Below, piece by piece: positions 24,950 through 51,731 of a stretch of DNA of 64,000 nt. The notes under the pieces are model-generated. The model was not told the origin of the DNA. It saw only the letters and a program-made list of their open reading frames with translations, and did not search any database. Location: the sequence record MK250017.1. One strand, written 5' to 3'. Both the position numbers and the translations under genes were made by a program. Position 1 is the stretch's first letter, and each line of letters opens with the position of its first letter.

Positions 24950-25708
24950 TTAACTATTAAAGACTGGTCTTATTGTGAATGCATAAAAACGTGGTTCCTA
25001 TATTATATGTGGTACTTCACTTTCATATTTTATATCATTTGAAAAATATAAACTTTGTGCATATGCTTTAATGTTATTTCTATATGTATTCATATATTTA
25101 GGATCTGATGTATTATAAGAAGTCCAGTAATTACCGTATCCATAACCAGAAAAACCTTCAGTAACACTTCCAGCAGCAGGTAAATATATAAATTCTTTAT
25201 TACCTCGTTTTTTAGATGTTATTTTATAACCAGGTATTATATTACCATTAGTATCACACCATTTCCAATTACAATATTTAATTAATTCTTCAAACTATTC
25301 CGGTGTTGGTATTTTATAATTTCCATTTGTTTCCTAATAAGCAGCATCATCTATATCTTCTAATTGGTAATGAACTTTATTCTTAGAATATTTTATAAAT
25401 GTTTTATTATTTCCAGATGGATTAAATTTTGTATAATCTGTTTTAAATATACGCTTAGCATGTACTGGTTCTGTATATCCCCATTGATAGTAATTACCTG
25501 GATCTGTTTCAGTTTCTGCACCTAGATTTTTAGTACACCATAATGTTCCAGAAGGTAAACCTAAATTTACAAATTTATAATTATTTGATATATTATCTAT
25601 TATTGTAGTATTATCATCTAATATAATATCATCGTCTATATCATCAAATAAACTTTCATATATTGCGGTTTTAATAGACTCTATTAATTTATTATATAAT
25701 AATGACAT
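24950..25708 (-). CDS. TAG-recoded protein with Bacteroidetes LGLPSGTLW domain (252 aa)
   Basis: VNLGLPSGTLWCTKNLGA, IPTPE(TAG)FEEL, IYLPAAG, YWTS, IRPV; 3 TAG. Confidence 0.7.
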
Positions 25709-25767
25709 AAAAATATAAAAACTTTTATTATTTATTTTATTATAATATGTGATTAATTATATTGAAT

Positions 25768-26640
25768 ATGAAGAAAATATTTAAGTTAAATAATAATATT
25801 TGTGATCAGATACTTAATGAAGCACAAATACATTTTACTAAAAATTGTTCAAACAGATGTCCTTTCTGTATTGATGCATTTAATAATGGTGTTGGAAATA
25901 AAAAACCAGATATAGATAAGATCTTTTTATCAGTATTAAACATAAAAGATAAAATAGATGATATTGCAATATCAGGTGGTGAACCAATGCTTTATATTGA
26001 TGAACTGTTACAATTAGTCAGAAATATAAAAAGATTTGCAAAATTAAATGTTACTGTTATTACATCAATGCCTATTACATGTTGGACACATAAAGAAACA
26101 TTTTTCGAAATAATAAAGATAATAGATCATCTTATTATTTCACCACAACATTATGATCAGGAAATTGGTGATAAAATCAGAGGTTGTAATTCATTTTATA
26201 ATAGAGAAAAATTATTCAGTGAAATACCATATAAAAATAAAGTTTCATTAACTATTAATATTATAAAAGGTTATTTCAATGATAAACAAGATATTATAGA
26301 TAATATAAAGTTTTTTGAAAAATTAGGTTATTCTAATTTCAAATTAGCAGAAATATTTGAACATGATGAACTTTATGTTTCCATAGAGGATTTATTAGGT
26401 TTTAAATTACCTTCTCCTTTTTCATATGGATGTTCAACAAAACATTTTGATCTATCTCCATATTTAGGATATAATTCAAATTCTGATTTTACTATTAAAC
26501 GATGCTGTTTTTATAAGACTCATAAACAACATGCGTCTATTAATGATTTATTGAAAATATTAATCAGACCATTTTTTGCAAAAAAATATTTTTTCTGTAT
26601 TATATATGAAGATGGAAAAATTGTCAGAAGATGGTTCTAA
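25768..26640 (+). CDS. Radical SAM protein
   Basis: CSNRCPFC (CxxxCxxC), ISGGEP. Confidence 0.85.
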   Translation: MKKIFKLNNNICDQILNEAQIHFTKNCSNRCPFCIDAFNNGVGNKKPDIDKIFLSVLNIKDKIDDIAISGGEPMLYIDELLQLVRNIKRFAKLNVTVITSMPITCWTHKETFFEIIKIIDHLIISPQHYDQEIGDKIRGCNSFYNREKLFSEIPYKNKVSLTINIIKGYFNDKQDIIDNIKFFEKLGYSNFKLAEIFEHDELYVSIEDLLGFKLPSPFSYGCSTKHFDLSPYLGYNSNSDFTIKRCCFYKTHKQHASINDLLKILIRPFFAKKYFFCIIYEDGKIVRRWF

Positions 26641-26661
26641 AAATAAAATTAGTTAATAATT

Positions 26662-27123
26662 ATGGATGTTAGAAAAATATTAGATAATATTACCAAATAT
26701 ATAGGTGATTATATTGCATCACATGCAGATAGAAATGAACTATTGAATAGTTATAATACTATAACAAAAATTGATAGTGCAATTAAAAATATTGATAGTA
26801 CATTGGAAACAATAGATGATAATGAATTATCAGATCGATTAAAAGAATATAAACATAAGAAGGAAGAAGAAAAAGAAAAGATAATGGATGAATTACTGTA
26901 TAAAGTATTACCTAAACCTTCTGTTATTGATATTAATGATTATTCAACAGATGGAAGTAATTATTATACATTAAATAGTAAGGAAAAAAATACACTAAAT
27001 TTTAAAGAAGTAATTAAAGAAAAACCAAAAGAAAAACCAATAACTACCAGAGATTATTATGAAACATATTCAGGTGGATGTGGAAATACATATGGTGGTT
27101 TTTCTCGTTCTGGAGGATGTTAA
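26662..27123 (+). CDS. Hypothetical coiled-coil protein with Gly/Cys C-terminal tail
   Basis: Ends SGGCGNTYGGFSRSGGC; adjacent to radical SAM gene. Confidence 0.55.
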   Translation: MDVRKILDNITKYIGDYIASHADRNELLNSYNTITKIDSAIKNIDSTLETIDDNELSDRLKEYKHKKEEEKEKIMDELLYKVLPKPSVIDINDYSTDGSNYYTLNSKEKNTLNFKEVIKEKPKEKPITTRDYYETYSGGCGNTYGGFSRSGGC

Positions 27124-27278
27124 ATAATAAATTCAATAAATTAATAAACTAATAAATTATGAAATTTTTATTTTTTATATTTTTTATGTACATTATTATA
27201 AAGTTATTTAATAACAATAATAATAATTCAAATTTAAGTTTAAATTAAATGAGTATACTATTTTAAATAAAGCACATT

Positions 27279-28214: not shown

Positions 28215-28215
28215 T

Positions 28216-29382: not shown

Positions 29383-29416
29383 TTATAAATATAAGAAATA
29401 AAATTTTAATTATTAA

Positions 29417-30841
29417 ATGAAAGTAACAACAAAGAAAGCTAAAGGTTTAGATGCACATATTATTAATGATAGTAATAAAAAAATAGTAAGAACTATAACA
29501 GATTTTTTAAATACAGATTATAAAGATTATACAAAGTATGTAATTGCAACACGAGCATTACCTAGTTTACTAGACGGCTTTAAAGTAGGCGCAAGAAAAA
29601 TTATGCATGCAGCTTTCCACGGAGGAATGAAAAACGGAAAGGAAATTAAGAATTTAAATCTTGTAGGTGATGTTTATAATTTAACTCTGTACATGCATGG
29701 TGACGCTAGTTTAACAAACACTATATTCACCCTTGCAGCAGAATTTCGTGATAATCTTAATCCTATTACTATAACAGGTCAGCATGGTTCATTACGAGAT
29801 GAAAAAGCCGTTTCTGCTCCTCGTTATCTTTTCTGTAAGTTATCACCATATGCAAATTTATATAAAGCAGATGAGGATCTTTTGGAATATGTGTTTGATG
29901 AAGGTACATATCTTGAGCCTGTAAATTATTGGCCAATTATTCCTACTGTAATTACATCTAGATCAGAAGGTATGGCACCTGGTTATAAATTCAGTTCATT
30001 TTCATATAATCCTGTTGATGTTATTGATGCATGTATTGAAATGTTGAATACTGGTGATATTAAAGAAACTGTGATTAGACCATATGTTAGAGGTATTAGT
30101 GAAGATAGGTTTACATTTGATACAGACGTAAATAAATGGTTAAATTCTGGTGTATATAAAGTAGATATTAAGAATGATATATTTCAGGTAACTGATTTGC
30201 CATATGATACAGGTTTTGATAAGTTTGAGAAACGTCTTAATGATATGGTTGAAAAAGGATTTCTTAAAGATTGGAAGAATTATTCACAGGATGATAAGTT
30301 GAATTATTGGTTAATTTTCCCTAAGAAACAACTTGAGCGTGAGATGAAACCAGATCGAAAAGATAAACTTTTTAAGAAAATAGGACTATATACATATGTA
30401 CCAGATGATTTGTTATATGTTCTTGATGAAAATAAGAAGGTAAAACATTTCATTAATAAAGAAGAACTTATAAAGTATTTTGTTAATATTCGTCTTAATA
30501 AGTATAATGATCGAAAAGATCGGTTAGTTACTGTTATGGAGAAACGATATGAAGATAACAACAATCTTTGTAGATTCATTGAATTGGTTAATAATGGAGA
30601 TTTGATTATTTCTAACAGAAAGAGAAAGGATGTTGTAGCAGATTTGAAGAAATATGATTTACCTGATTCTGTTTTACAAATTCAAATTTCTAAGTTAACT
30701 GATGAAGAGAAAAAAGAATTAATTAAGAAAAACAAAGAGATAGAAAAAGAGCTTAAGTATATTAAGAAAACAACCATAAAGGATATGTATCTTGATGATT
30801 TGAGGAATTTAAGAAAGACTCTTGAAACTGAATTTTGTTAA
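29417..30841 (+). CDS. DNA topoisomerase II, breakage-reunion subunit (T4 gp52-like, GyrA-like)
   Basis: RALPSLLDGFK, YMHGDASL, catalytic SAPRYL. Confidence 0.93.
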   Translation: MKVTTKKAKGLDAHIINDSNKKIVRTITDFLNTDYKDYTKYVIATRALPSLLDGFKVGARKIMHAAFHGGMKNGKEIKNLNLVGDVYNLTLYMHGDASLTNTIFTLAAEFRDNLNPITITGQHGSLRDEKAVSAPRYLFCKLSPYANLYKADEDLLEYVFDEGTYLEPVNYWPIIPTVITSRSEGMAPGYKFSSFSYNPVDVIDACIEMLNTGDIKETVIRPYVRGISEDRFTFDTDVNKWLNSGVYKVDIKNDIFQVTDLPYDTGFDKFEKRLNDMVEKGFLKDWKNYSQDDKLNYWLIFPKKQLEREMKPDRKDKLFKKIGLYTYVPDDLLYVLDENKKVKHFINKEELIKYFVNIRLNKYNDRKDRLVTVMEKRYEDNNNLCRFIELVNNGDLIISNRKRKDVVADLKKYDLPDSVLQIQISKLTDEEKKELIKKNKEIEKELKYIKKTTIKDMYLDDLRNLRKTLETEFC

Positions 30842-31644
30842 TGGAAAATTTATTTGATGACGATATTTTATTAAATGATGATAATGATGTTACTTCAGTG
30901 TTTGGTGATACTGCGGTAACATCATTATCTAATTTAGTTAATGATAATTTGAATTATCTTAAATTCAATAGTTATATAAATAATGATATTTATAAACGAC
31001 ATAATGCTTTTTATGCTTATATGGATTCATTTGAAGGCTATGGACAATATAAAAATTATTTTGACGTTGTGACATTTGATGTTAATAGTCCTTATAGTAT
31101 TTCATTGAATATAAAGGGATTATTAGGTGAAAAATATCACTGTAGACATTATAAGAATTGTTTATTAGGTGTTATAGATACTAATATAATTAAAGCTATA
31201 CCACATATTACAAATATTAATATAGAACCTTTATATGATTTTTATGAAGTAAATGAAAAATGTACGAAATTTTTAATATTCATGACATTATCAAAATATC
31301 GTGATAAAAATAAAAGTAATTTAATAGATGATGAATTTATTGAGAATATAAAAGAGTTTATATTAAATTTTAAAGATAATAACATATATTATGAATTAGT
31401 ATTTGAAAATGTAGTATTTGAATTTGAATCAATTAAAAAATTTAATAATTTATTACCATCTAATATAAAAATTCAAATAACAGGAGATTGTAAAATACAT
31501 CTACCAGATGATATTATTGCTAAATATAAACAAGTTCAACAAGATATGCAAATTTCATTATTTGCTAATACATATCCTGACTTTGATGATTGTGATAATA
31601 TTACATTTAATATATTTTCAGTACTTAAAGATTTGAGATATTAA
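30835..31644 (+). CDS. Hypothetical protein with LFDD leader
   Basis: MLMENLFDDDILLNDD start. Confidence 0.6.
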   Translation: MLMENLFDDDILLNDDNDVTSVFGDTAVTSLSNLVNDNLNYLKFNSYINNDIYKRHNAFYAYMDSFEGYGQYKNYFDVVTFDVNSPYSISLNIKGLLGEKYHCRHYKNCLLGVIDTNIIKAIPHITNINIEPLYDFYEVNEKCTKFLIFMTLSKYRDKNKSNLIDDEFIENIKEFILNFKDNNIYYELVFENVVFEFESIKKFNNLLPSNIKIQITGDCKIHLPDDIIAKYKQVQQDMQISLFANTYPDFDDCDNITFNIFSVLKDLRY

Positions 31645-32355: not shown

Positions 32356-32371
32356 TCTTCCTTTTATTATT

Positions 32372-33520
32372 TTAATCAAAAATATCATGAAAATGTTCTA
32401 ATGTTTCATCTGTTAACCTAACAATTACACATGAATCAATTTTATTACCTATACTATATCTATCAGTATTTTCATTATTACATTTACTAAGAATCTCAGA
32501 ATTAATATTTTTATAGAAATAAAATGTTAACCCATTTTTTGTTAATTCATATACAGCATTATTATTATCTTTTTCTATATCGTTTAACGGATATATATTT
32601 TTCTGTAATAACCAAATTAAAAACGTAGGTATATTATATTCTTTTGAATTTTTACATAAATTTACTTGACGTTTCCAATTAAAATAAACTATACCATATG
32701 GTTCATTTTTATCATCAATATAAAAACTATTATCTTTAATAACATTTAAAGTTCCTAGTTTTTTATAACGTGATTTTAAAAATGATATACGTTTATTTAT
32801 ATCTTTTGTTTTAATAATAATATCTTTCTAGTTATTATCATCTTTTTCTTCATATATAACTTTACCTGTTAATTTAAGAATTGCAGTAAATGTTGATTCA
32901 TTATAATTATATGGAATACCACATCCAGAAGGTGACTGATATGATAACATTATACCTTCATCTTCAGATAATAAAATCGTTTTATATGTTGGATCATTTC
33001 TAAAACACTCTTGAACAATTTCAGGCATTGCAGGAAATATTTTATTAACCCAATTGTCATATTCATGTTCTAATTTTAAATAACCACAATTTGCATATAA
33101 CTCACTATCTTTAGGTGGTAATCCTCGTGTAAGTCCAAGTGATTCCTTTTCTTTACATTTACCATCATAAAATGATAAATTATTAACAAATGCATAAGGA
33201 CAATTTGATACTCTATATACATTAAATTTTTTCTTTTTTAATGCATCCATCATATCTTCTAATGCTTTATCTGGATATAAAGAACCCTTTCTGCCTCTAT
33301 GTATAAGAACCTCTTTGTTATTAATCTTTTCATATTTCCAACTACGTGGTTTATCGATACCGAGAAGATCTACCACAATTGGTTTTAAATCATTTTCTGC
33401 GAATCGAGCAGATAAATCGGTATCGATTGAACCTGTAGTTTCATCGGATAATATATCATCATCAAATAAGTCTGAAAATGATTCAAATAATTTCAATAAA
33501 TTATATATATTCTTTTTCAT
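32372..33520 (-). CDS. TAG-recoded 382-aa protein with LFDD leader
   Basis: Track ORF ends at TAG 32828 but frame stays open to TAA 32372. Confidence 0.65.
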
Positions 33521-33550
33521 ATTTTTAATTATTCTATTATGATATATTTA

Positions 33551-36500
33551 TTATGCAAGAACTAACAAGATAGGAGTTAATGTAGCTGATTTCCATGTTG
33601 CATAATAAGTGACTGAACTATTTATAGTAACTGTACTTGTAGAACCACTTGTTGCAGTACTGCTTGTAGACCATCCGTTAAAAATATAATTATTGCGTGT
33701 AGGTACATAACTTCCTATATTAAATGTTCCTTTTGTATATGTAATATATGGATTTGATGTTGTATATTCTTTACCACTTACTGTTAATGTACCATTATTA
33801 GGGTTAAGAACAACTTTATAACTTGCTATTGTTAACTATAAATATACATTTGTTGGATTAGATGTTACAGTTGCTGTTGAATTAGATAATAAAGTACCAC
33901 CAGATGCTGCAGTATACCATGCACCCGTATATCTTATCGTATTATCAACTTTTCTAATAGGATTTGCTAATGGTATAGGAGCAGTTAGAGAACTATATTT
34001 TGTTCCATAAGCTACAGATGAACTTTTTGCTAATGTTACATCATCTGACCAAATAATAACCATTGAATCTGTATTATTCCAATTAATTGTACATGTATTA
34101 GCTGAACTTGTATATATAGCATAAAAATTAAAAGTTGAGATTGTTGTAGTTAATGTATATGGAAATGTAACTACATTTCCATTTGTTGTTAAAGACCAAC
34201 CTTTAAATTTATAAATCGTTGAGGTAGTTGCTGTTTTTGATGGACTTGATGAATATGCAGAAATAGAATCTCCATAATTTTTCTTTTCTGATTTCTATGT
34301 AGAACCATCACTGAAAGTACCACCGTTTGAATTCCAATATACAGTTTTTTGAGTAACTGTATACATTGCATTAAATAGTATAGGTGTCGTACCTAATGTA
34401 ATACTTACAGGAAATTTTGTATAATATGTACTATTATAATACCAACCAAGAAATGTATTACCTGTTTTACTAGGAGTATTTTTATAACCTATATCAGATG
34501 GCTAACATTTAATCGATCCAGGATTATGATAATCATATATTGCATTACTTGTTGATGTTCCGCCTGATGCTGGTGAAAGTTGTCCACCATTTGGATCCCA
34601 AGAAACTTTTACATAACCAGTAGAAGCGGTGCTCCAACGAGCATATAAATTTATATCACCAGTTAATAAAGATCCACTTGTTACTGCATTACCTGTTGTT
34701 GTTGTTGAATAGTTACCAAGGAATACATATTTTAAATTACTACCTTCTACCCATGTAGGTGTTTCATCTGGTATTAATCCTGTATATGGTGTATCTTTAC
34801 TAAATTTCTTTGTAATTGATTCATTACCAGTAGTTTTACTCCATTTCGCGTATGTATTGTTTTTATGAAATGTTACTGTATATAATGTTGTATTACCTGT
34901 TTGTGATGCTATTGCAGTATCTGAATAACTACTATATTTTCCAGTAAATGTATATGTTCTATTGGTTTTACTTGACTATATATTTGGTATTGTCGGTTTG
35001 TTACCTGTAAACGAAAATGTGTTCTGTTGTGTTTGTCCATATTCTCTATATGTACCAGAAAATGTTGTTGAACTTGTTACATTTGTATTTGTAGGATTTG
35101 TACTTGTAGCACCGGATGTCCATGTTACATTAAATTTTTTTATTAATGTTGCGGTTAAAGTAGCAGAACCACCTTTATAGTCAAATGAAGTTGGACTTAC
35201 TGAAACAGATAAGTTTGTACTTGTTGGATTTGATGCTTGTGTACCACTATTTCCCTATCTTGTTAATGTAACTTTTGATGATGCTTCTAAAAACTTACCA
35301 CTTGCATTTTTAACGTCATGCTATTTTCCATTATATGTATGCTTTAAATTTTTAATATCAACTGTAAAATTTGTATACTAAATATCTGCAGCTTTTGGCG
35401 TAGTTCCTAATGAATTTGCAGTAAAAGATGTTGGTGTAAATGTATACATGGCAGCAGTTAAATCATTAAATGTCCATGTAACTGTTTCTGTTACTGTCTT
35501 ATTTTCCATAGACGTATAAGTCCAGTCATAAGTACCTTTCAATGTACAGTCTGTTGCAGTTATAGTTTTACCAGATGCAGGAAAATGATAACCAGATTTA
35601 TCTTTAGTATAGCTATATTCTGTTATTTTCAGATTAGAATATATAAATGCTTTTGATTCATTTGGACCATCTAATTTCTATGAAACTGATACTTCATTTG
35701 ATGTTATACCATCATACGTTGTTTTGAACTTTATTGTTCTTGCTGAAGTAGATGCAGGAATTTTATATGATGTTCCTTTAGTTGATGAAACACCAGTTAT
35801 TCCAGTTATTGTATATGTCTAATTAGCATTAACTGCTTCAGGACCTTGATTTGCATCACTTCCACCACCAGATGTTGAACCAGATGTATACTAATAAACA
35901 ACTTTATTTAATGTATACTTTCTCTATAATGTAAATGTTACAGTTCCTCCTGAACTATATACTGTTGTAGGACTTACAGATAATATTACGCTGGTGGTTT
36001 TCTTTGATTCTGGTGTTTTAATTGTCTTAGTGTTTGCTGCTTGCTTAACTGTAAAACTAGGATGTGTTAATGTAACTCCATCAATTGTTGTTTGTTTCTG
36101 TGTTGTACCTCCTGCTGCTATAGTTTTAACATCAGTGACACCAGATTCTGTAGTGCCTTTTGTTGTAGCACTTACTGTAGAAAAGGTTATATTTTCTGTT
36201 ACATTTTCTGTTTCACCTGTATTATATGTTTTCCTAAAAGTTAATGTACCCGAACTTATATTTCCTCCGCTTGCAGGAATTAAATTTGTAGTAATACTTG
36301 CATTATCTAATTTAGTTACATACTTATTACGTTTTGTTTGCGTTACAGTAACTGTTATAGAATAGCTTCCAGTTTCATCTGTATATTGTGCAGTATCTGT
36401 ATATGTTCTGTCAGATGTTGCATTATCACGTTTTCCAAAAGTAAATGTAAATCCATCTTCTTTATTTCCTGTTGTATTTACTCTACAATCAGATGCTATT

Positions 36501-36778
36501 CCGCTAAATGATGGTATCAAATAATGTTTTTCAGTAACAGGTGATATAACAAATCCTTCTCTAACTGTATTAGTTCTTTCAACCCAACATTTACAGTTGA
36601 CTGTTGTTCCACCTTCCCATGATATAGATGGTATTGTTTGAGGCTCTTTATGTGTAGTCCATTTTCCATAGGAAACTGTTTTCTTTACATAGAAACGTCT
36701 GGAAGTTTTCTGTCCTTCCCAACACACATGTTGTTTTTTCTATACATCAACTGCTTTATTATTATTTTTTATAATCAT
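33551..36778 (-). CDS. TAG-recoded 1075-aa Ser/Thr-rich adhesin/fibre with Ig-like and InlB B-repeat (Listeria-Bacteroides repeat) domains
   Basis: Manual translation ATG 36778 to TAA 33551 with 12 TAG; repeated V.W(D/N)PNGG...P.KTG.TFLGWY and FNGWSTS...YYATW units. Confidence 0.8.
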
Positions 36779-37818: not shown

Positions 37819-37893
37819 ATAATAATTAAAATGTATTTTATTATTTATTTTAGATAATAATTCATGAAATATTTTTTTAATTAAAATATTATA

Positions 37894-40907: not shown

Positions 40908-40912
40908 ATAAA

Positions 40913-40951
40913 AATGGGTGATTAAATATTCCTGATATTTAATCACCCATT
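40913..40951. terminator. Long hairpin terminator after TBDR
   Basis: aatgggtgattaaatat ... atatttaatcacccatt. Confidence 0.7.
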
Positions 40952-41014
40952 AATTATTTCATATTTATCAATAATTATAAATTAATTATAAATAAGATAA
41001 TGAAAATATAAAGA

Positions 41015-42307
41015 ATGATTTATTTAGAAAAAATGAGTAAATGGAAATTAAATGAAAATAGTATAAACGAATTTTTATGGACATGTGCAGGTGTTAATAA
41101 GAATATATTAAGATTATATCCGAGTGAATATGCAAAATATGCAGGTAGTGGAGGAACTATTTTATTTACTGCTATGATGGCATTTATATCAGGTAGTTAT
41201 GCAATGTTTTTTGTATTCAGTAATGCTATATTATCACTGATCTTTGGTATATTCTGGGCATTACTTATATTTAACCTTGACAGATTTATTGTTAATTCCA
41301 TGCATACTGATGGTAAAGACACATTAAGTTGGAAAAAGATTCAAACGGCAATGCCACGTATAATTATGGCTATATTTTTAGGTATTGTTATTTCAACACC
41401 ACTTGAAATGAAGATATTTAATGATAGAATAGAATCATAGTTACTAAAAGATAATATAGAACGAATAAATTCAGCAAAGAATGAATCATCAGATTATAAA
41501 ACAATATCATTATTACAAGCAGAATAGAACCAATTGACAAAAGATCGAAAACAACTGGTAGATGATTTACAGAAAGCATAGAAAGAACTGAAAGAAGAAG
41601 CAGAAGGAAATGCATTATCTGGTATTGCTGGGCATGGGACTATATATAGAGATAAAGAAACATATGTTAATCAATGTAAACAATCATTATAGGAATGGGA
41701 TCTTCTTCATAAAGAACGGTTGACAACTGTATAGAAACGTATTGATGAAGTTAATAAGCATATTGAAAAATTTGAAGGTAAAATAGATGGTTTAAGAGAA
41801 GATGGTTTCAGCGCAAGGTATGAAGCTTTTTCAAATCTTAAAGAAGCAAATAATTCATTAGCGATGGTATCATTCATGATAACAATGTTGTTCATTATTA
41901 TTGAAGTTACACCTACATTTTTTAAACTTATTATGACATCAGGGCCATATGAAGAACATTTATAGATAGAAAATTATAAAATAACCGCATATGTTACTAA
42001 AGAGAAAAATGGTATTGATACAGAATTAAAAATAGATGATTATAATAATAAAGAAAAATTAAAAGCTGTTATTAAACAAGATGAACCTATTATTGATGTA
42101 ACAGATGTATCAGTAAAACCTATTGTATATTCAGCTATATAGTCATTAACATTAGAATCAGAACAAGAACCTGAAGAAGTTCCATATATAAAGTCTAATA
42201 CATCTATTATAACAACACCTGTTGCAACAAAGAAATTAGAATTTAAGAAAAATGAGAAAGGACAAATTATGTTAGATTTCTCATCAAGACCTAAAAAATT
42301 AAATAAA
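41015..42307 (+). CDS. TAG-recoded DUF4407-like membrane coiled-coil protein (430 aa)
   Basis: FLWTCAG, IFNLDRFIV, PRIIMA..GIVISTPLEMKIF, IEVTPTFFKL; 7 TAG. Confidence 0.75.
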
Positions 42308-42372
42308 TGAAATAAAAATAATATCCATTAAGAAAAAAACTTAGTGGATATTTTTTTATATAAAGAATTATA

Positions 42373-42382
42373 TGTATCTTTG
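42373..42382 (+). promoter_or_regulatory. Bacteroidetes-type -7 promoter element
   Basis: TGTATCTTTG. Confidence 0.7.
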
Positions 42383-42418
42383 TATTGTAATTAAATAATA
42401 ATTTAAATAATAAAGAAT

Positions 42419-43426
42419 ATGAGTGAATTAATGTTTAAGAGTAAGAATGTAACACCACAGTTGAATACTTATGTTATTAAGGTAACAGGTAAGTATAATG
42501 ATCATCTACCATGGGAAACAAATATTATTAATGTAGAAGCAGATCGCATGAATAATTTTGTGTTGTTATTTCTTGCATATGTTGGTAACAGAAATTGGCA
42601 GCATAAATGGAAGAATTCTACATTCGGCGAGAATTTTAAGAAGGGACCACTGCAGACATATCTAGGTGCTTTTACCGAAGATACACATTATCCATGTATG
42701 GACCTTATGTGGAATGATGTTGTTTCAGTCAACATTAATTATGTTAATAATAATGGTACATACATTTTGTGTGAACTTCCTGATGTAGAAGAGCTGTATG
42801 ATACTGAGGAGGATTTCCTCAAGGAACTTAAGTCACAGTTTGATGAATTTAATAAGAATGATCCTCGTGATGTTTATGAAGATGAAGGAATTGAGATTGT
42901 TGATTCATATGAGCTTGAGCTTGTAAGAAATGTTCTTCGTTCTACTGGTAAGTGGGATAATGATGAAATTGATAATCTGTTTTGGGTTGATCGTGAGATT
43001 GGTTTTAGTTCATTGGTTGCACGTACTTCTACAGATGAAAATATTCTTAAAGTATGTAAGCAGGAACATGCTAAGAGTGCAACAGGTGTTGAGTATAATG
43101 GATTTAAACCAGAAACACTCGAAAAGATTAAGACCGCTATTAGTGGAACAAATCTTCCAGAGGAAACTAAGACATTTGTAATTGACATTTGTTCTAAGTA
43201 TAATTCAAAGAATATGTTGAGTGAATCTGAGAAGGAAGATCTTAAGAATATCATGGAAACATATAATTTGGTAAATTATTCATATGGATGGATTGGCCCA
43301 GATGGTTGGAGTGGTATTTACCTTGAGCATGTGATAGATCCAGAGATGATTGATTTCGATGATTATTCAGAGAATTCAGTTATTAAGTATGAGGGTGAAA
43401 CATATATTATTCATGAAGGAGATTAA
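42419..43426 (+). CDS. Hypothetical protein
   Basis: 335 aa, AAG/CTT-rich codon usage like the highly expressed genes. Confidence 0.65.
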   Translation: MSELMFKSKNVTPQLNTYVIKVTGKYNDHLPWETNIINVEADRMNNFVLLFLAYVGNRNWQHKWKNSTFGENFKKGPLQTYLGAFTEDTHYPCMDLMWNDVVSVNINYVNNNGTYILCELPDVEELYDTEEDFLKELKSQFDEFNKNDPRDVYEDEGIEIVDSYELELVRNVLRSTGKWDNDEIDNLFWVDREIGFSSLVARTSTDENILKVCKQEHAKSATGVEYNGFKPETLEKIKTAISGTNLPEETKTFVIDICSKYNSKNMLSESEKEDLKNIMETYNLVNYSYGWIGPDGWSGIYLEHVIDPEMIDFDDYSENSVIKYEGETYIIHEGD

Positions 43427-43429
43427 TTT

Positions 43430-43852
43430 ATGTTAATTATTCTATCAATAGTATTAATTATTGTAGGATTATTTCTTGGAATTTTAATAGGTACTTTAGG
43501 ATCATTTGGTGATTCTGAAATACCTATTAAAGAAGATAAAATAATCAAGAGATGTTTGTTATTTAATATAGCATCTCGGTGTGATAAAATTATACTTGTA
43601 TGTTGTACACCATTCGGATGGTTAGGAATTCTTTTATTATTTGTATGTTGTTTTGTATTTCAACATATTATAGGAATTATGTTTATTAGTCCTTTACCTA
43701 TGATGGAATTTCTTAATACATTTGAAGACAAAATATATAGTTTTGCACTACTATATTTAGTACCTATGTTTGGTGGTTATTTTATAGGTTATAATTATAT
43801 GAATAATTTTATTAAACGAATAGAAAAAGAAGAACATGAAGAAAGGAACTAA
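43430..43852 (+). CDS. Membrane protein (about 3 TM)
   Basis: Hydrophobic segments. Confidence 0.55.
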   Translation: MLIILSIVLIIVGLFLGILIGTLGSFGDSEIPIKEDKIIKRCLLFNIASRCDKIILVCCTPFGWLGILLLFVCCFVFQHIIGIMFISPLPMMEFLNTFEDKIYSFALLYLVPMFGGYFIGYNYMNNFIKRIEKEEHEERN

Positions 43853-44330
43853 ATTTTATGTTATATTAGGTTATAATACAGAAACAGAAGCCTGGTATGG
43901 ATATGTAGAAAATTCTTTTTCTATGGGTGCAGATAAAAATAGAATTAGAACATTTTCTACATGTAGAGCAGATTATCCTTGGAAAGATAGATCATTTTCA
44001 GAGAGAAAACGAATAGCGAAAGCATATTTGAAGAAACATGGTTATAGATGTAATTATGCTCGTGATTATATTATAGATGCAAAGATGAATCCTAATTCAC
44101 CAAATCAATGGATTTATTTTTATTTGCGAGATATTGTAGACAATCTTAATAAAAAACATTATAATAATTGTTATTGGAAAGTATATAGAGTAAATTCTAA
44201 GTTTTGTCCTATTAATGTAAATATGAATGAATATTACAAAACATTAGTAAATAAGAAATTTAGGAAGTCTCTTGACAAATTTCAATTAAGAAATCAAGAA
44301 TTTTCTGTAAAGGAAGTTTCAAAAGATTAA
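43836..44330 (+). CDS. Hypothetical basic protein
   Basis: 164-aa ORF. Confidence 0.55.
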   Translation: MKKGTKFYVILGYNTETEAWYGYVENSFSMGADKNRIRTFSTCRADYPWKDRSFSERKRIAKAYLKKHGYRCNYARDYIIDAKMNPNSPNQWIYFYLRDIVDNLNKKHYNNCYWKVYRVNSKFCPINVNMNEYYKTLVNKKFRKSLDKFQLRNQEFSVKEVSKD

Positions 44331-44337
44331 AAATATA

Positions 44338-44592
44338 TCGGTATGGCTCTAAAGGAGAGAGCATCATTTATGACTAATGATGACGAAGATTTGTTCGTAA
44401 GTTAATCTTTACTAAGAGAATATACAATATTTAGTTATATAGAAGTAATTTAATTGTTATAATGCGAAGACAATTTTATATGAAACTATATATGTCATTT
44501 ATGAGATTATAGTGAAGAATAGCATTTACAGTAACTATAATAAGATGATATAAACAATATAACTTCTGTGGTTCGATTCCACACGTACTGAC
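44338..44592 (+). ncRNA. tRNA-like RNA with 186-nt insert in the variable region (TGA at anticodon position)
   Basis: Acceptor tcggtatg/cgtactga, D stem gctc/gagc, stem tcatt/aatga with loop tatgact, T arm tgtgg-ttcgatt-ccaca. Confidence 0.65.
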
Positions 44593-44610
44593 TAATAAAC
44601 ATATAACATT

Positions 44611-44829
44611 ATGAAAGAAGAAATTAAATTCTTAGGTAAAACACCGAGAGAAATTGCAGAACGTTACTTCAATAAATCATATGAAGGTAAAGAACGATAT
44701 GATATTTTAGTTGAAGGCTTTATTGAGGGATTTAATTATCTATTTCCTCATTATGATATAGCTAATACTTTGGTTGAAACATTTGAACGAATTAAAGAAT
44801 TAGAGAATAAAGAGAAAAAAGATTCATAA
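44611..44829 (+). CDS. Hypothetical protein
   Basis: 72-aa ORF. Confidence 0.5.
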   Translation: MKEEIKFLGKTPREIAERYFNKSYEGKERYDILVEGFIEGFNYLFPHYDIANTLVETFERIKELENKEKKDS

Positions 44830-44854
44830 TTATTTTTTTAATTGAAATAAAATA

Positions 44855-44864
44855 TGTATCTTTG
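44855..44864 (+). promoter_or_regulatory. Bacteroidetes-type -7 promoter element driving the ncRNA island
   Basis: TGTATCTTTG; no ORF downstream. Confidence 0.7.
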
Positions 44865-44870
44865 TATTGT

Positions 44871-44974
44871 AAATAATGAACACCTATAAGTGTTAAGTAA
44901 CATAGGTATGGAAACCCTACGGTTCGTAAGTAGTAATATCGAATAGTCCGCATAATAGGAACATGTCATTATTT
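44871..44974 (+). ncRNA. Candidate ~104-nt structured small RNA
   Basis: 9-bp terminal stem aaataatga/tcattattt starting at the expected +1; internal cctat/atagg and ttcg/cgaa stems. Confidence 0.4.
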
Positions 44975-45014
44975 TAACATTTATATAAGAATATACTACA
45001 TGTCTTATATGAGC

Positions 45015-45355
45015 GTCAGGAGTATTGTAACAGAGTCGACGTGTTTACATTTTTAGAGGCGCAGTTTTTAAATCTGACTATTCTATGTAAAGTAGTGAAG
45101 TGCAAGATACGGCGTCAGTACAAGTCTATATAATAAGTTGCAAATAAAAATAGAAACTGTTAAAATTCGTATCTAAATTTGTCTGTATTTCACAATGGTC
45201 AATGAGGTACATGAAAAGTGATTTGGAAGAATCATTATAGACATATTATGATTAAGATAACGTTCAACTAAGCTATAGAATAATAGTAAGTATAGCGCTG
45301 AAAATATATGTTTATATGTATTGCGGTTGTGGTTCGAATCCACATACAGACACGA
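45015..45355 (+). ncRNA. ssrA: Atypical tmRNA
   Basis: gagtcgac (cf. GAUUCGAC), helix-2 pairing tattctat/atagaata, actaagctataga (cf. ACUAAGCAUGUAG), resume context taagttGCA, T arm tgtgg-ttcgaat-ccaca; about 340 nt. Confidence 0.7.
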
Positions 45356-45360
45356 CTTAT

Positions 45361-45860
45361 TAATGATGAAAAGTCTGCACTTAACAAAATATAAAAAACA
45401 TTTTAATGTACTGTTGATTATATGTTTTAATTTTGTTAAATAAGAGATTATTGTAAATTATAGAAATTTACAAATCGAGGGGAACGCATAACGGCAATTA
45501 TGTTAGTACTTGGCGTTTAATGAAATGAATATGTATATTTGCCGATATGCATATGAGTGACATTAAATGATAAAATTATAATAGTGTAGCGGTTCGCACG
45601 CCCGTTGGTAAAACGGGAAGGGTTTATGTTTGAAAGCATATTAGGGGTTCGACTCCCGCTTATAAACAATTAAATTACATAATGTTCTCACGAAGAGCGA
45701 GCATCGGAAGGTGAGCAATTTAGAAAGATGTTTAAGAGTGATCATATTAAATTGATTTCTAACAGAAATACGGTGACGTAGGAGCTGAAAAAGAACAAAC
45801 GTATGGTAATGTTAGCATTATGTATTTAAAAAATATTAGTCCTCACAGACTTTACATTTT
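45361..45860 (+). ncRNA. Candidate large ornate ncRNA with kissing loop and embedded cloverleaf
   Basis: Closing helix aaagtctg/cagacttt plus aatg/catt; at least 8 internal stems; loop-loop cggcaa/ttgccg; terminator follows. Confidence 0.6.
45575..45667 (+). tRNA. Degenerate class-II tRNA-like cloverleaf, Tyr(GTA) by loop centre
   Basis: Acceptor ttataa/ttataa, D arm gtgt/gcac, cccgt-tggtaaa-acggg, long variable arm, T loop ttcgact with only 3-bp stem. Confidence 0.45.
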
Positions 45861-45891
45861 TTATAACTTTAAAATTTTGAATTTAATATTA

Positions 45892-45925
45892 AATCCGATG
45901 CTTGTGGTAAGTATCGGATTTTTTT
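45892..45925 (+). terminator. Intrinsic terminator closing the ncRNA island
   Basis: aatccgatgctt-gtggt-aagtatcggatt followed by a T run. Confidence 0.8.
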
Positions 45926-45940
45926 AATTCATAAAAAATA

Positions 45941-45950
45941 TGTATCTTTG
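45941..45950 (+). promoter_or_regulatory. Bacteroidetes-type -7 promoter element
   Basis: TGTATCTTTG upstream of nadR. Confidence 0.7.
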
Positions 45951-45980
45951 TAATATATTAAATAATAATTAAATAATTAA

Positions 45981-47141
45981 ATGATTAAGAATATAGGAAT
46001 TTGTTTTGGTGGTTATTGTCCTATGCATCAGGGACATCTTGACCTTATAATGAAAGCAAAGAAAGAAAATGATATTTGTTATGTGGTTGTTTGTGGTTAT
46101 ACAGATGAACCACGAGGTAATGAATTAGGTCTTAATATTAATAATAGAAAAAGACTTATTAAAGAGTTTTTTAAAAATGATGAACTTATTCGAGTTCTTA
46201 CTGTAAATGATACAGAATTAGGTATTGATGAAAGTATGTCTGAACATAATTGGAAAGTATGGACAGATTATGTAAAATATCAAATTACAGATGATCTTCT
46301 AGGTGGAGGTCCGACATTTCCATTTAGTCCAGATGAAAGGATTAAAGCGCATGAATTGAAACTTACATTCTATGTTGGTGAAAAGTTCTATGTTGAATCA
46401 TTGAATAAATTAAATATTAATGCAGTGTTAGTTGGTTACGATGAGAATTCTCCATCTAATAGAAGTAATGATATATCAGCAACATATATTAGACAAAATC
46501 CTCAATATTATTGGGATAAGATTGTATCAACATTTAAACCTGCATTAACAAAGAAAATTCTTGTATTAGGTACAGCATCAGAAGGGAAATCAACACTTGT
46601 TAAAGATATTGGTAATTATTTTAATATACCATATACAACAGAATTCGGTAGGGATTATATGGAGAAACATTGTATGTTAGATCCTGATATTACTGTAAAT
46701 GATTTTGTTGAATTCCTTATTGGACAGAGACAATACTATTTTGATGCTTTGAATGATAAAGGAAATAAGGGCGTTATCATTTCAGATACAGATAATCTCG
46801 TTACACTTATGTATGCAAAAGCATATGTATCTGATAATAATATGCAAATTACTGAAGATGAATATAACAATATATTGAAACCACTTGCAAAATCATTACA
46901 AACAGGTGTTTCATGGGATGTAATTTATCTTATCAAACCGCATAATAAATTTGTTGATGATGGAACACGTTACATGAATCAATCTTCAATAGATGAGAGA
47001 ATGAAGAATTATAAAATTCTTTTATCATTACTTGAAGAGTTTGGTTTACTTGATAAAGTAATTGAATTGAATGGTTCTTATATGGATCATTTTAATTATG
47101 TTAAGGATTATATCACAAAATTATATGATAAAGAAAATTAA
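45981..47141 (+). CDS. nadR: NadR-type NMN adenylyltransferase / ribosylnicotinamide kinase
   Basis: FGGYCPMHQGH (HxGH), then Walker A GTASEGKST, EFGRDY, DTDNLVT, FVDDGTR. Confidence 0.88.
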   Translation: MIKNIGICFGGYCPMHQGHLDLIMKAKKENDICYVVVCGYTDEPRGNELGLNINNRKRLIKEFFKNDELIRVLTVNDTELGIDESMSEHNWKVWTDYVKYQITDDLLGGGPTFPFSPDERIKAHELKLTFYVGEKFYVESLNKLNINAVLVGYDENSPSNRSNDISATYIRQNPQYYWDKIVSTFKPALTKKILVLGTASEGKSTLVKDIGNYFNIPYTTEFGRDYMEKHCMLDPDITVNDFVEFLIGQRQYYFDALNDKGNKGVIISDTDNLVTLMYAKAYVSDNNMQITEDEYNNILKPLAKSLQTGVSWDVIYLIKPHNKFVDDGTRYMNQSSIDERMKNYKILLSLLEEFGLLDKVIELNGSYMDHFNYVKDYITKLYDKEN

Positions 47142-47790
47142 TAATATATTATATTCAGAGTTTATAGAAGGAAGAAATATTAATGAACATTTGTTTATGC
47201 TCATTGGTATTTTCCTTCAATTAATTGCATGGTATATAACTAAAGATTCATTAATTTCTTTAATATCGGGTGTAACTGGTATTATATCTGTTATATTATG
47301 TTCACAAAGAAAGATTTCATTTTATTTCTTTGGCTTTATACAGTTAGGAACATATATGTATCTTGCATGGCAGCAAAGATTTTATGGTGAATTAATAGAG
47401 AATGTATTTTATATTATTACTATGTTAATAGGTATTGTAGTATGGTTAAAAAATTATAATACTGAAGAACAAATAGTAGAATCTAAAAGACTTTCTGATA
47501 GGTTATTCTATATAATATGTAGTATAATGGTGTTTATCTGTGTATTATTTGGTTATTATATGAAATACTTTACAGATAATACACAACCATTTATGGATTC
47601 ATTTTCAACAGTACCTGCATTTATAGCGCAGACATTGTTAATGTTACGATATAGAGAACAATGGATATTCTGGATTATAATTGATGTTGTTTCTATATTC
47701 ATGTGGATGTTTGCTGATAATTGGATAATGGTTATTCAATTTATATTTTGGACAATGAATTGCATATATGGTTATAGAAAATGGAAATAA
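47125..47790 (+). CDS. pnuC: PnuC-family nicotinamide riboside transporter
   Basis: Multi-TM; SGVTGIISVILCSQRK, FMDSFST, REQWIFWIIIDVVSI; overlaps nadR. Confidence 0.9.
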   Translation: MIKKINNILYSEFIEGRNINEHLFMLIGIFLQLIAWYITKDSLISLISGVTGIISVILCSQRKISFYFFGFIQLGTYMYLAWQQRFYGELIENVFYIITMLIGIVVWLKNYNTEEQIVESKRLSDRLFYIICSIMVFICVLFGYYMKYFTDNTQPFMDSFSTVPAFIAQTLLMLRYREQWIFWIIIDVVSIFMWMFADNWIMVIQFIFWTMNCIYGYRKWK

Positions 47791-47805
47791 TAAAAATAAA
47801 ATAAT

Positions 47806-48051: not shown

Positions 48052-48054
48052 TAT

Positions 48055-48522: not shown

Positions 48523-48720
48523 TTTTATTTAATATGAGTTTTCTTACATATTTTTTAATTGCTTATGGTATTATTTCAACCATTTCTATTTGTGTATTTG
48601 CATATGAAATAAAACATGCACGTAATATTGATTCTAATGCATGTTTTTTAAGAGGTGATATATCAAAAGATGCATTTAATAATAAAACAAAGTAATTAAT
48701 ATATTAAAATTATAAGATTC

Positions 48721-49482
48721 ATGGCGTATATAGATAAAACCTATATAGTTGATTATCAGCAGTTTAAAGAAGTTCGAGACTGGTGTAAAGGTAAGATTGT
48801 CGAACTTCCTAATGGCCTTAAATATCATGCAGAGAATTTTTTGAATGATAAAGATATGTCAGAAGAGTATTTCAATAATTGGAAGAATGAAATTATTGAA
48901 AATCGAATGAGGACTTATGGAGAGACATATGAAAAGGCATATAAAAATGCAGAAATTCCATTATGGAATACACCATATTACTTTGATATATGGCTTATAA
49001 AGAATTGTCCTATACAATTTATACAGGATCGACTTAAATATCAATATGATGATGAATATGAGCAGATTAAAAATGGGACATCATCATATGATACATATAA
49101 GAGAAATGGTCTTGGAAAGAATTTTCATTATAAAGTAATTCGCAAACCAAATTGGAACCCACGTTATAAATTCACTTATGTTGATCGACTCGGTAATGAT
49201 AAGTGTTATAAGGAAAATCAAAAACCGTGGTGGCTTATCACTATTGAAGATACTAAAACAGTAAATCCAATTTCATGGTGGGTAAATACTGAACATAATT
49301 ATTGGACATGTTCAGAAGAAGGACTTCCATTTAATAGTAATATGCTGGATATAAAGAGGAAGAATCTTAATATTCATGCTATCATCAGAATGATTAAGAA
49401 ATGGGATTTACCTGTCGGCTCACAAGTTAAGGTATTAAATAGATATTTCAATTACGGTTGGATTATTAATATTAAAAAATAA
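48721..49482 (+). CDS. Conserved hypothetical phage protein
   Basis: MAYIDKTY...LWNTPYYFDIWLIKNCPIQFIQDRLKYQY. Confidence 0.6.
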   Translation: MAYIDKTYIVDYQQFKEVRDWCKGKIVELPNGLKYHAENFLNDKDMSEEYFNNWKNEIIENRMRTYGETYEKAYKNAEIPLWNTPYYFDIWLIKNCPIQFIQDRLKYQYDDEYEQIKNGTSSYDTYKRNGLGKNFHYKVIRKPNWNPRYKFTYVDRLGNDKCYKENQKPWWLITIEDTKTVNPISWWVNTEHNYWTCSEEGLPFNSNMLDIKRKNLNIHAIIRMIKKWDLPVGSQVKVLNRYFNYGWIINIKK

Positions 49483-49562
49483 AATTAGAAGGATGTTATT
49501 TAGACGGTTAAATAACATCCTTCTTTTATTATAAATATAAAAAATGGGATTAATACTTATAT

Positions 49563-50612
49563 ATGAATAAACAAATCAAGCAATTGTTAGAAAATTTATT
49601 TGATGATTATGATGACTTAATATAGGATGATAATGATAATATTGAAAAAGATTCCATAGGTAAGAAAATAACTGATGAAGATATAAAGAAAAAAGTAAAA
49701 GAATGGTTGCGTTATAATATTGCATCAAGTCCAGAAAATAATAATATAGATAGAAATCTTACTTTTGAATATATTGATGACATACTTTATTGTAATTTAC
49801 ATTTTAATGGTTATATGACAGTATTTATGAGTGAAATACCTGATTATGTAAAGATTAATAAAATTACATGTAAAGATATTAAATTTAATAGTTTATATAA
49901 TTTACCGAAGGAAATAGATGGAGATATGCTTATAGATGGTTATAATCATACGAAATTAATTGGTAATTTCCCCGAAAAAATAGGTTGTTTAAAGATATGG
50001 AATTCAAAAATAAAATCATTGGAAGGACTCAATGATAATTGTGGTTCTATTGAATCATTAGAGATTGAGGCATGCAATAATTTCCAATATTTTATGGGTA
50101 TTCCAGAAAATGTAGGACGTGTTTCTATACAAGAATGTAATAAACTTCAAAATTTAATAGGATTACCAGAATCTGTTGATGATATAGAGTTAACAGATTT
50201 AAGGAAATTTTCAAGTTTAGAAGGATGTCCAAAAGAGTTAAAAGGAGATTTACGTATAACAGATTGTAAAAAATTATTATCATTAAAATATATTTCATCT
50301 TTAATCATAGGAGATTGTTCTGTTACGTATACAGGTATAGAACATCTTGATATGACTGAATCAAATACAAGAGTTATAGGAGACTTTAATGTTTCTAATA
50401 ATAAGTTAGTTGATTTAAGTAATGGACCAGAAGATGTAAGAGGTAATTATGATTGTGCATATAACTCAAAATTGACATGTTTAAATGCGCAAGATACACT
50501 TATGTCTGGATATAAGAAAACATTTGATTGTACGAAAAATAGAAGACTAAAAACATTATAGGGATTACCTATGATGATTAAAGGAGATATAATAGTAAAT
50601 ACAGATTTATAA
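49563..50612 (+). CDS. TAG-recoded leucine-rich-repeat protein 1 (349 aa) with LFDD leader
   Basis: Repeats IKSLEGL, LQNLIGLPE, FSSLEGCPKEL, LVDLSNGP; 2 TAG. Confidence 0.8.
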
Positions 50613-50699
50613 AAATTAAATACGTCATACAAATAATATATATGTTATAAGTAAACTATTTGATAAATATAAAAATTATATTAAACAATTTATATATGA

Positions 50700-51731
50700 A
50701 TAAACTTATTAGAAAATCTATTTGATGATTATGACGATATAATATAGAATGATAATGATGATATTGGAGATGATCTTATAGCTAAAAAGTTAAAAGAGGA
50801 AGAGTAGTAGAAAGTAAAAGAATGGCTTTGTAATAATATCTCAACTAACAAATATGAAGTGTTTCTTAATAATATAGATAAATACGTTACATTTGAATAT
50901 ATTGACGGTATACTTTATTGCAATTTAGAGTTTATTGATTCTATAACAAAATTTAAAAGTCCAATACCAGATTATGTAAAGATTAATAAAATTAAAGGTC
51001 ACGGTCACATTACATTTAAGAGTTCATATAATTTACCAAAAGAAATAGAAGGAACTATGTGTATAAAAAGTAATGAGACAAAAATTATTGGTCCTTTCCC
51101 ACAAAAAATTAAAGTCTTATGTATAAAGTGCCCAAAATTAAAGTCATTAAAAGGCCTTAATGATAATTGTGTTTCTATTGGTAAATTATATATAGATAAT
51201 AGTTTGAATTTACAAGATTTAACAGGTTTACCAGATTCTGTCAACTATTTATAGTTGACTTATTGCAATTTTCCAAATTTAAAAGGATGTCCAAAACAAT
51301 TAAATGTTTTAAACATACAAGAATGTAATAAACTTGAAAACCTTATAGGATGTCCAGAAACTATTGAAAAAATAGATTTGTTAAATTTAGAAAATTTTTC
51401 AAGTTTAGAAGGATGTCCAAAACAATTAGATGGATTGGATATATGTGGTTGTGAAAAATTAAAATCATTAAAATATATTTCTCCTTTAATAGGGAAAGGT
51501 GGATTAGGTGTTTCACGCTCAGGCTTAGTTGATTTAAGTAATGGTCCAAAAGAGATAGAAGGTAATTATTATTGCAATACTAATCCAAATTTGAAACGTT
51601 TAAATGCACAAGATACAGTTATGACGGGACATGAGACTGCATTTCATTGTTATAATAATGATAGCTTAAAAAGATTAAAGGGATTACCTAAGATGAAATA
51701 CAAAGATATAAAAATAAAGACTGATTTATAA
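50700..51731 (+). CDS. TAG-recoded leucine-rich-repeat protein 2, paralog of LRR1; ATG out of frame
   Basis: Same leader and repeats; 4 TAG; 11-nt deletion after ATGAATAAAC relative to LRR1. Confidence 0.7.

Follow-up and report, generated by a model that had tools for sequence, protein, structure and literature searches.

Why would a very large phage place one and the same short acidic leader at the start of proteins that otherwise have little in common? The question is raised by a 64,000-nucleotide stretch of DNA from sequence record MK250017.1 (the whole of which we call the window), in which a first-pass annotation, made from the sequence alone, had noticed six genes between positions 24,950 and 51,731 whose products begin with a common leader (L-x-E-x-LFDD), and had proposed that the leader is a modular tag that targets proteins to the phage head and marks them for processing. 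The window is part of the genome of Prevotella phage Lak-A1 (MK250015, 541,664 bp, from human faeces) and is 100% identical to that record (record position = window position minus 15,323). Lak phages, which no one has yet brought into culture, count among the largest phages known and are frequent in the guts of humans and animals. Nearly all of their proteins are unannotated; the two primary Lak papers make no mention of N-terminal motifs, a protease or internal proteins. We found that the leader is real, and that it may be a head-targeting and processing tag in the style of phage T4, a reading to which we give about an even chance.

Whole-genome statistics were computed from the window together with the rest of the Lak-A1 record, with the masked window stretches 650-11404 and 61379-61497 left out. 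The reassignment of TAG has been published for Lak phages (PMC6784885), and TAG was accordingly read as Gln throughout.

A shared leader at the N-termini of Lak-A1 proteins

In the six-frame translation of the window, the sequence LFDD was found six times against 0.9 expected, with a maximum of 4 in 200 Markov resamplings, and all six copies were located at the N-termini of open reading frames (ORFs), at most 40 codons past the preceding stop when TAG was read as Gln. A scan of the whole Lak-A1 genome with a hidden Markov model of the leader, which the first-pass annotation had suggested, returned 14 members with scores of 18-41 bits, the next match scoring 9 bits, and all 14 were N-terminal. 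A looser pattern added a fifteenth member (TLNESMFDDFDDD), for a total of 14-15 leader proteins in this genome. The tag had originally been set against the alternative that the motif is no commoner at N-termini than internally, and this alternative failed, as the pattern [LI].E.[LFIVMA]F[DE] occurred 13 times within the first 40 residues of Lak-A1 proteins and only twice internally, an N-terminal enrichment of about 34-fold per residue, while residue-shuffled Lak-A1 proteins gave the same pattern 0.43 times N-terminally on average. An independent genome search counted 14 leader copies each in Lak-A1, Lak-C1 and a 553-kb IMG/VR contig, and 11 in Lak-B5. Thus, the shared leader is real and far beyond chance.

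Under TAG = Gln, each of the six leader sites in the window was found at the gene start that had been given for it, and five of the six genes do have in-frame TAG, as claimed. Leader protein 1 (24950-25708, minus strand; 252 amino acids (aa), 3 in-frame TAG) has the leader MSLLYNKLIESIKTAIYESLFDD at 25640-25708, followed by an acidic linker and a C-type-lectin-like cargo (LGLPSGTLW...). Leader protein 3 (32372-33520, minus strand; 382 aa, 1 TAG) begins with MKKNIYNLLKLFESFSDLFDDD at 33455-33520, and leader protein 4 (36802-37818, minus strand; 338 aa, 6 TAG) with the canonical leader MNKNIKKLLESLFDDD at 37771-37818; both have orphan cargos. The canonical leader MNKQIKQLLENLFDD of leader protein 5 (49563-50612, plus strand; 349 aa, 2 TAG) is located at 49563-49607 and precedes a leucine-rich-repeat (LRR) cargo.

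The two remaining members are unusual. For leader protein 2 (30841-31644, plus strand; 267 aa, no TAG, orphan cargo), the first-pass annotation had placed the leader at 30835. LFDDD is indeed present, but the most probable start is an ATG at 30841 that overlaps with the stop codon of an upstream topoisomerase subunit gene (TAATG). Because of this start, protein 2 has a truncated leader, MENLFDDD (30841-30864), in which LFDDD is preceded by almost no segment before the Glu; its Lak-B5 orthologue begins with MIDNLFDDD. The sixth copy belongs to an LRR gene at 50696-51731 (plus strand). The sequence INLLENLFDD is present at 50700-50729, as reported, but the ATG of the gene (50696) is out of frame with it. 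At this point, an 11-nucleotide (nt) direct repeat (TTATTAGAAAA) is found once in Lak-A1 and twice in Lak-C1, and the Lak-C1 orthologue has an intact leader (MNKLIRKLLENLFDD). The disruption of the frame in Lak-A1 at 50696-50729 could be either a real slippage allele or a consensus artefact.

The six proteins had been described as unrelated. Their cargos are largely so, but the two LRR proteins (protein 5 and the product of the sixth copy) are paralogues with 48% identity, so that the window has five cargo families and not six. When the leader was removed from the Lak-A1 leader proteins, all-against-all BLAST linked only three LRR proteins with each other and three LGLPSGTLW proteins with each other.

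Anatomy of the leader and selection on the peptide

The leader alignment gave the canonical form MNKxIKxL(L/I/V/M)E(S/N)LFDD(D), after which comes an acidic run; the Glu is invariant and the Leu-Phe nearly so. The leader is of two parts: a slightly basic segment that ends in (L/I)-x-E, and LFDD with a strongly acidic linker. (L/I)-x-E is present in every full-length leader, and the Glu is residue 10 in 7 of the 14; longer leaders have an additional helical stretch, and leader protein 1 has two L/I-x-E sites, LIE-10 and IYE-18. The net charge up to the Glu is 0 to +3 in full-length leaders, while the 25 residues after it have a charge of -5 to -11 versus a genome background of -0.4 +/- 2.9. Hydrophobic residues at i, i+3, i+4, i+7 and i+8 resemble those of an amphipathic helix, and the helical hydrophobic moment is 0.8-2.1, with all 14 leaders at or above the background mean of 0.78.

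Between the leader patch and the cargo domain there is an acidic, disordered linker of 20-35 residues. In the AlphaFold2 model of protein 1, residues 2-20 form a helix, residues 16-42 have a predicted local distance difference test (pLDDT) score of <50, and the cargo is confident; in that of protein 3, residues 1-41 have a pLDDT of <50 and the confident core spans residues 45-220. In both models, an N-terminal helix and a linker of low confidence are detached from the confidently predicted cargo domain, and the leader part itself is modelled with low confidence.

Copies of the leader differ in the codon for the serine that follows the Glu (AGT or TCN), and the DNA ahead of the leader start codons is, apart from a short promoter-like element, unconserved. 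Because of these codon switches and the unconserved upstream DNA, an origin at the DNA level (a shared promoter or 5' cassette) was rejected. On the other hand, the leader peptide was well conserved while the cargo was not: in nine pairs of Lak-A1 and Lak-B5 orthologues the leader is 80% identical and the rest 47%, and in the pair of protein 4 the leader is 93% and the rest 44% identical. Protein 3 has 26 homologues, all on contigs of Lak size, in which the first 24 residues are nearly invariant at overall identities of 47-91%. On the Lak-B-like contig L003/G007, where the capsid protein shares 94% identity with the one from Lak-A1, the leader matches parallel those of Lak-B5. These comparisons indicate that selection acts on the leader peptide and not on the DNA.

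Late-gene signatures of the leader genes

The sequence ATAAATA, followed by four bases and then AA, was found 22-46 nt upstream of the start in 109 of the 511 Lak-A1 genes, and upstream of 46% of the TAG-containing versus 12% of the TAG-free genes. The element resembles the T4 late promoter TATAAATA. Because of its position upstream of starts and its preference for TAG-containing genes, we consider it a candidate late promoter. Of 13 leader genes, 10 have ATAAATA at positions -46 to -22, mostly some 30 nt before the start, compared with 99 of the 498 remaining genes (Fisher p = 2e-5), and 10 of 13 leader genes have in-frame TAG versus 41% of all genes. The same element is found at the protease gene described below, at the gene adjoining the terminase and at the giant structural ORFs; one leader gene is located directly downstream of the large terminase gene. 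It appears from the promoter-like element and the TAG enrichment that the leader genes are probably expressed late.

Within the window, the element is located 27 nt upstream of leader gene 1 (25729-25735, minus strand), upstream of leader gene 3 (33545-33551, minus strand) and leader gene 4 (37842-37848, minus strand), at leader gene 5 (49531-49537) and at the sixth copy (50663-50669), with a further element at 29385-29391. Between leader genes 4 and 3 (33551-36778, minus strand) lies a gene for a Thr/Ser-rich protein of 1075 aa, with 12 TAG and a Listeria-Bacteroides repeat and without the leader. Because this gene has no ATAAATA element of its own, leader gene 4, the 1075-aa gene and leader gene 3 may form one late operon.

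The leader in other Lak-like megaphages

A search of 2.9 million IMG/VR contigs for the exact canonical leader pattern gave 24 occurrences. They are confined to eight contigs of 158-554 kb, six of which also hold a Lak capsid gene at 94% identity or more. Diverged leaders were found in more distant relatives. A 673-kb contig (G002, IMGVR_UViG_3300021431_000075; capsid 73% identical, GC 41%) has 31 of them, all N-terminal and none internal, with the form ..(L/I/V/M)NE(S/N/T/D)L(L/F)(D/G).V..DEV.D. Many of these genes stand in tandem arrays of paralogues of 400-780 aa (52-93, 208-226 and 309-326 kb), for which BLAST found no Lak-A1 relative. In a 380-kb, TAG-recoded contig with a capsid protein 63% identical (G003), about 27 genes start with MK.Y.KILEA.NRGIQLALDDFED, and at least 14 of the leader proteins there have a lectin-like cargo homologous to protein 1; when protein 1 and this family were aligned together, the invariant leader residues were Met-1, Glu-10 and Leu-20.

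The Lak-A1 leader profile itself found nothing in the distant contigs G003-G005. Since the diverged leader of G003 was revealed by de novo counting of N-terminal words, the blank result of the profile in G003 reflects a limit of its sensitivity. The presence of the leader architecture in both the 673-kb and the 380-kb relatives shows that it is old in the clade, and no trait of it is more persistent than the leader Glu with an L/I two residues ahead.

We also observed a second shared N-terminal class, K(K/A)LYE(S/N)IM..V(A/S)K.VKK.(L/I)NE, which has two L/I-x-E motifs. It is represented in the window by genes at 54323-54766 (plus strand), 23448-24908 (minus strand) and 18584-19540 (plus strand), and in total by a dozen or more late Lak-A1 proteins and at least 15 proteins in G003. 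In protein 1 and in the product of the gene adjoining the terminase, a similar helix is combined with LFDD.

Head protease and major capsid protein

Lak-A1 has a homologue of Peptidase_S77 (T4 gp21), which matched PF03420 at 3e-16 and 57.6 bits, above the Pfam cut-off, and T4 gp21 at 4e-9 in BLAST, where the gp21 motifs for His and Ser pair with GELDHP and VSSRAAG. The N-terminus of the protease itself reads TLNE↓AFDS (arrows mark known or proposed cuts). The gene (L029) is located outside the window, at positions 187881-189632 of the record (minus strand), and the protease domain occupies the first ~200 residues of an ORF of 584 aa. The long C-terminal part of the ORF is highly acidic, with a weak local similarity to the T4 scaffold gp22 (E = 0.17); the ORF may be a protease-scaffold fusion.

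The gene for the gp23-type major capsid protein (Pfam Gp23, 1.9e-32) is found at 62173-64000 on the minus strand, with its first 54 codons beyond the window end. The KLNE that had been noted in the N-region of this protein is present at 63970-63981 (minus strand) and corresponds to L62-N63-E64 of 662 aa, followed by DAF. The site is one residue off the cut of T4 gp23 at LTE-65 (PMC5694885). This (L/V)-N-E, together with an earlier site of the form (I/L/V)-x-E↓(A/S)-W-x-P, is kept in the capsid genes of 13 Lak-like contigs that are 61-100% identical. The earlier site in the Lak-A1 capsid protein, AIYE↓S, has the same five residues as are found in the leader of protein 1.

Cargo domains of the leader proteins

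In an exhaustive structural alignment, the top matches of the cargo of protein 1 were all C-type-lectin-like with Z scores of 6-7, which is fold-level evidence only; they included the C-terminal domain of Lcl, a Bdellovibrio fibre tip, variable proteins of diversity-generating retroelements (DGR), Mtd, and formylglycine-enzyme-like proteins. Foldseek gave no significant match for protein 1. Template repeats for the 3' ends of the lectin-like genes were searched for and not found, so there is no sign of DGR-type diversification of receptor binding. Protein 3 had no fold match (Foldseek E >0.01; VIA Z <5).

Searches of the leader cargos against Pfam, PHROGs and NCBIfam gave no matches except weak LRR matches, FISUMP below its cut-off, and DUF285/PARCEL in one protein, which is a further leader cargo with a DUF285/PARCEL-type LRR. 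No leader protein had a replication or metabolic domain in these databases, and protein 2 had no match at all in them. Proteins 2, 3 and 4 and most of the other Lak-A1 leader cargos are thus orphans. Protein 5 had weak LRR matches far below the family cut-offs; membership of the LRR cargo in EspK/GogB was rejected, as the score of about 23 bits against a cut-off of >900 reflects generic LRR similarity.

Comparison with known head-targeting and cargo-loading systems

A capsid targeting sequence has been described for the T4 internal proteins (IPs) IPI, IPII and IPIII (Mullaney and Black 1996; reviewed in PMC9026906 and PMC3012670). The first 10 residues of IPIII are sufficient for head targeting, with residues 8 and 10 governing the processing, and the internal proteins of T-even phages are diverse and have only this targeting sequence in common (PMC9026906, PMC3012670). 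In the T4 record, the N-termini of head proteins read MKTYQEFIAE↓A for IPII and IPIII, MAKINELLRE↓S for gp24, MNEPQLLIE↓T for gp21, MLKEQLIAE↓A for gp22, MEGLIE↓A for gp67 and MELITE↓LFDEDTT for Alt. The Lak leader resembles the targeting sequence of the T4 IPs in being a short N-terminal tag on otherwise unrelated, fast-evolving accessory proteins, with L/I at position 8 and Glu at position 10 (MKTYQEFIAE in T4, MNKNIKKLLE in Lak). Like T4, Lak-A1 also has a gp21-family protease, a gp23-type capsid protein with an L-x-E site near residue 64-65, and tagged genes that are probably late, although cleavage in Lak is putative. However, there is no detectable sequence homology between the Lak leader and the T4 IPs, and the likeness consists of the spacing and of a resemblance to Alt over ~8 residues, which is too short for statistics. 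The number of proteins also differs, with 11-31 tagged genes per Lak-type genome compared with three internal proteins plus Alt for T4.

T4 Alt is cut after ITE-6, and the mature protein begins with LFDED (PMC5694885). The proposed Lak site, ...LLE↓SLFDDD, shares with this head-packaged and injected ADP-ribosyltransferase a hydrophobic stretch, x-E and LFD(E/D)(D), while in Lak the Glu and LF are separated by one additional residue (S/N) and the cargos have no similarity to Alt. The resemblance over ~8 residues could be convergent.

In the giant phages phiKZ, 201phi2-1 and SPN3US, a gp21-related protease cuts many head-internal proteins after Glu, and gp53 and gp54 of SPN3US are paralogous ejection proteins with identical N-termini (PMC5694885). 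Unlike in Lak, the motif of the phiKZ type is (S/A/G)-x-E or A-x-E, the propeptides are mostly much longer, and no short tag common to unrelated proteins has been reported. The first 30 residues of phage P1 DarB suffice to bring a heterologous protein into the capsid; the natural cargo is an anti-restriction protein that is delivered to the host (PMC9024508); unlike the Lak leader, DarB has no described shared motif family, requires other Dar proteins, and enters a head that is not of the gp21/gp23 type. Cargo-loading peptides of encapsulins are short, and through them cargo of various kinds docks on the inside of an HK97-fold shell. Those peptides differ from the Lak tag in being usually C-terminal, with another consensus, no protease step and a non-viral setting.

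What the leader may do

We propose, as the reading with the best support, that Lak-type megaphages place the tag on a changing set of late accessory proteins. The tag would dock these proteins onto the assembling prohead core, and the gp21-like protease would then cut off the segment before the Glu, after (L/I)-x-E. The cargo, with SLFDD and the acidic linker, would remain in the head alongside the DNA, from where it may pass into the host during infection. That the leader is a T4-style head-targeting and processing tag of this kind seems to us as probable as that it is something else. If so, then by analogy with Alt the mature protein probably keeps the docking element, and the scheme would be a variation on that of T4 and not a copy.

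All computational tests that were run are consistent with the modular targeting and processing tag of the first-pass annotation, but three facts fit a simple model of it poorly, and several observations weigh against it. The most conserved residues (L12, F13, D14 and D15, with the acidic run) lie after the proposed cut and would remain on the cargo, whereas the targeting information of the T4 IPs sits in the decapeptide that is removed. The T4 internal proteins are small and basic, whereas the Lak leader proteins are large (230-650 aa) and very acidic at their N-termini. L-x-E as such is enriched only 1.3-fold at the N-termini of the AT-rich Lak-A1 proteome overall, so that the reading of L-x-E as a cleavage site rests on its invariance within the motif. 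Protein 2, coupled to the topoisomerase gene and free of TAG, keeps LFDDD without a preceding L-x-E. Finally, wherever the fold of a cargo can be recognised, it is that of a binding module of the C-type-lectin-like or the LRR/BspA type, and in phages and bacteria such modules are usually located at the surface. Because of the conserved part after the cut, the member without L-x-E and the adhesin-typical cargo modules, we retained three rival explanations.

The main rival is that the tag is an external anchor, which would fix exchangeable binding modules on the capsid surface or tail; L-x-E would then be part of a docking helix, and the leader proteins would be an adhesin repertoire. The cargo folds are of adhesin and receptor-binding kinds (Lcl, the Bdellovibrio fibre tip, DGR proteins and Mtd; the DUF285/PARCEL LRR), and G003 has at least 14 tagged lectin-like paralogues. 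The retention of the conserved LFDD-acidic part on the protein is expected under either model, and late expression fits both equally. Against an anchor are a Glu and an L/I two residues before it that are invariant in three deep lineages, in agreement with the capsid site and the T4 rule, and a Glu-10 that reproduces the spacing of the T4 IPs and gp24; nor was a template repeat found for the lectin-like genes that would point to DGR-type diversification. To our knowledge, decoration and fibre proteins attach via folded domains and not via peptides of 10-20 residues. We consider an external anchor unlikely.

It is also conceivable that the leader is an intracellular docking motif unrelated to the virion, which late in infection would bind a hub of the phage or the host, for instance a chaperone, a platform of the clamp or SSB kind, a compartment or an export route. 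Hub-binding peptides typically combine an amphipathic helix with an acidic run after it, LFDDDIL bears a loose likeness to acidic-hydrophobic tails, of which the C-terminus of SSB is one, and the topoisomerase-coupled member suggests a link with DNA metabolism. Yet no member has a replication or metabolic domain. The Gln of the sliding-clamp motif QL[SD]LF is missing at the equivalent position, as the leaders read L-x-E-S-L-F, and the leaders have neither a hydrophobic core of at least 10 residues or a lipobox Cys, as in Sec and lipoprotein signal peptides, nor the Gly-Gly end of a double-glycine leader. In addition, the leader genes carry the promoter-like element of the structural genes, and the likeness to the N-termini of T4 head proteins would have to be a coincidence. 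Such a role in the cell is, in our judgement, distinctly improbable. Least of all do we favour a passive remnant without a function of its own, left by new genes captured or shuffled behind a common 5' segment, or by a DNA or RNA element: the leader genes are many, strain-variable and often tandem, which fits frequent recombination, but the unconserved upstream DNA, the use of both serine codon families at one position, a leader far better conserved than its cargo over long divergence, and the 31 N-terminal versus 0 internal motifs of G002 make it highly implausible.

To return to the head-targeting tag, its fullest form would be a dedicated cargo-loading system, in which 11-31 binding proteins of diverse kinds (lectin-like, LRR and orphan) in each genome would be singled out by the tag, packaged into the giant head and delivered to Prevotella, and the LFDD-acidic docking part, retained on the cargo, perhaps acts in ejection or in the host. 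We put this forward tentatively, as possible but doubtful. If true, the set of proteins that uncultured megaphages inject could be deduced straight from their sequences. Any tag that marks head-loaded proteins would give 3-5% of the Lak genes a first functional label and would point out the proteins most likely to meet the host first, as candidate counter-defence or takeover factors. It would also extend the T4 principle of capsid targeting to a lineage that is very distant and TAG-recoded, in a modified form with the conserved part after the cut. Should Lak capsids ever be produced, the tag might serve as a loading handle.

Genetic code and neighbouring genes

The recoding of TAG in Lak-A1 is supported by three findings: many fragments merge into long ORFs when TAG is read as a residue, the genome has two tRNA genes with a CUA anticodon, and 41% of the genes have in-frame TAG. 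The tRNA genes are located outside the window (joined coordinates 240652-241631 and 305527-305599), two with anticodon CUA and one with anticodon UUA; the latter hints that TAA, too, may at some stage be read through.

Between leader genes 4 and 5, a TonB-dependent receptor (plug and barrel, Pfam 6e-20) and a DUF4407 membrane protein (3e-70) are encoded in a region that comprises 38838-40907, 41015-42310 and 45981-47790 (plus strand), and the same region (38838-47790) has genes that we judged by eye to be of the NadR and PnuC types. Further downstream, a TAG-rich pair of ORFs at 59075-61081 (plus strand) appears by eye to encode a serine recombinase and a TnpB-like protein, and N-termini nearly identical to those of this pair are found at two other sites in the genome (joined coordinates 100549 and 306119-307465).

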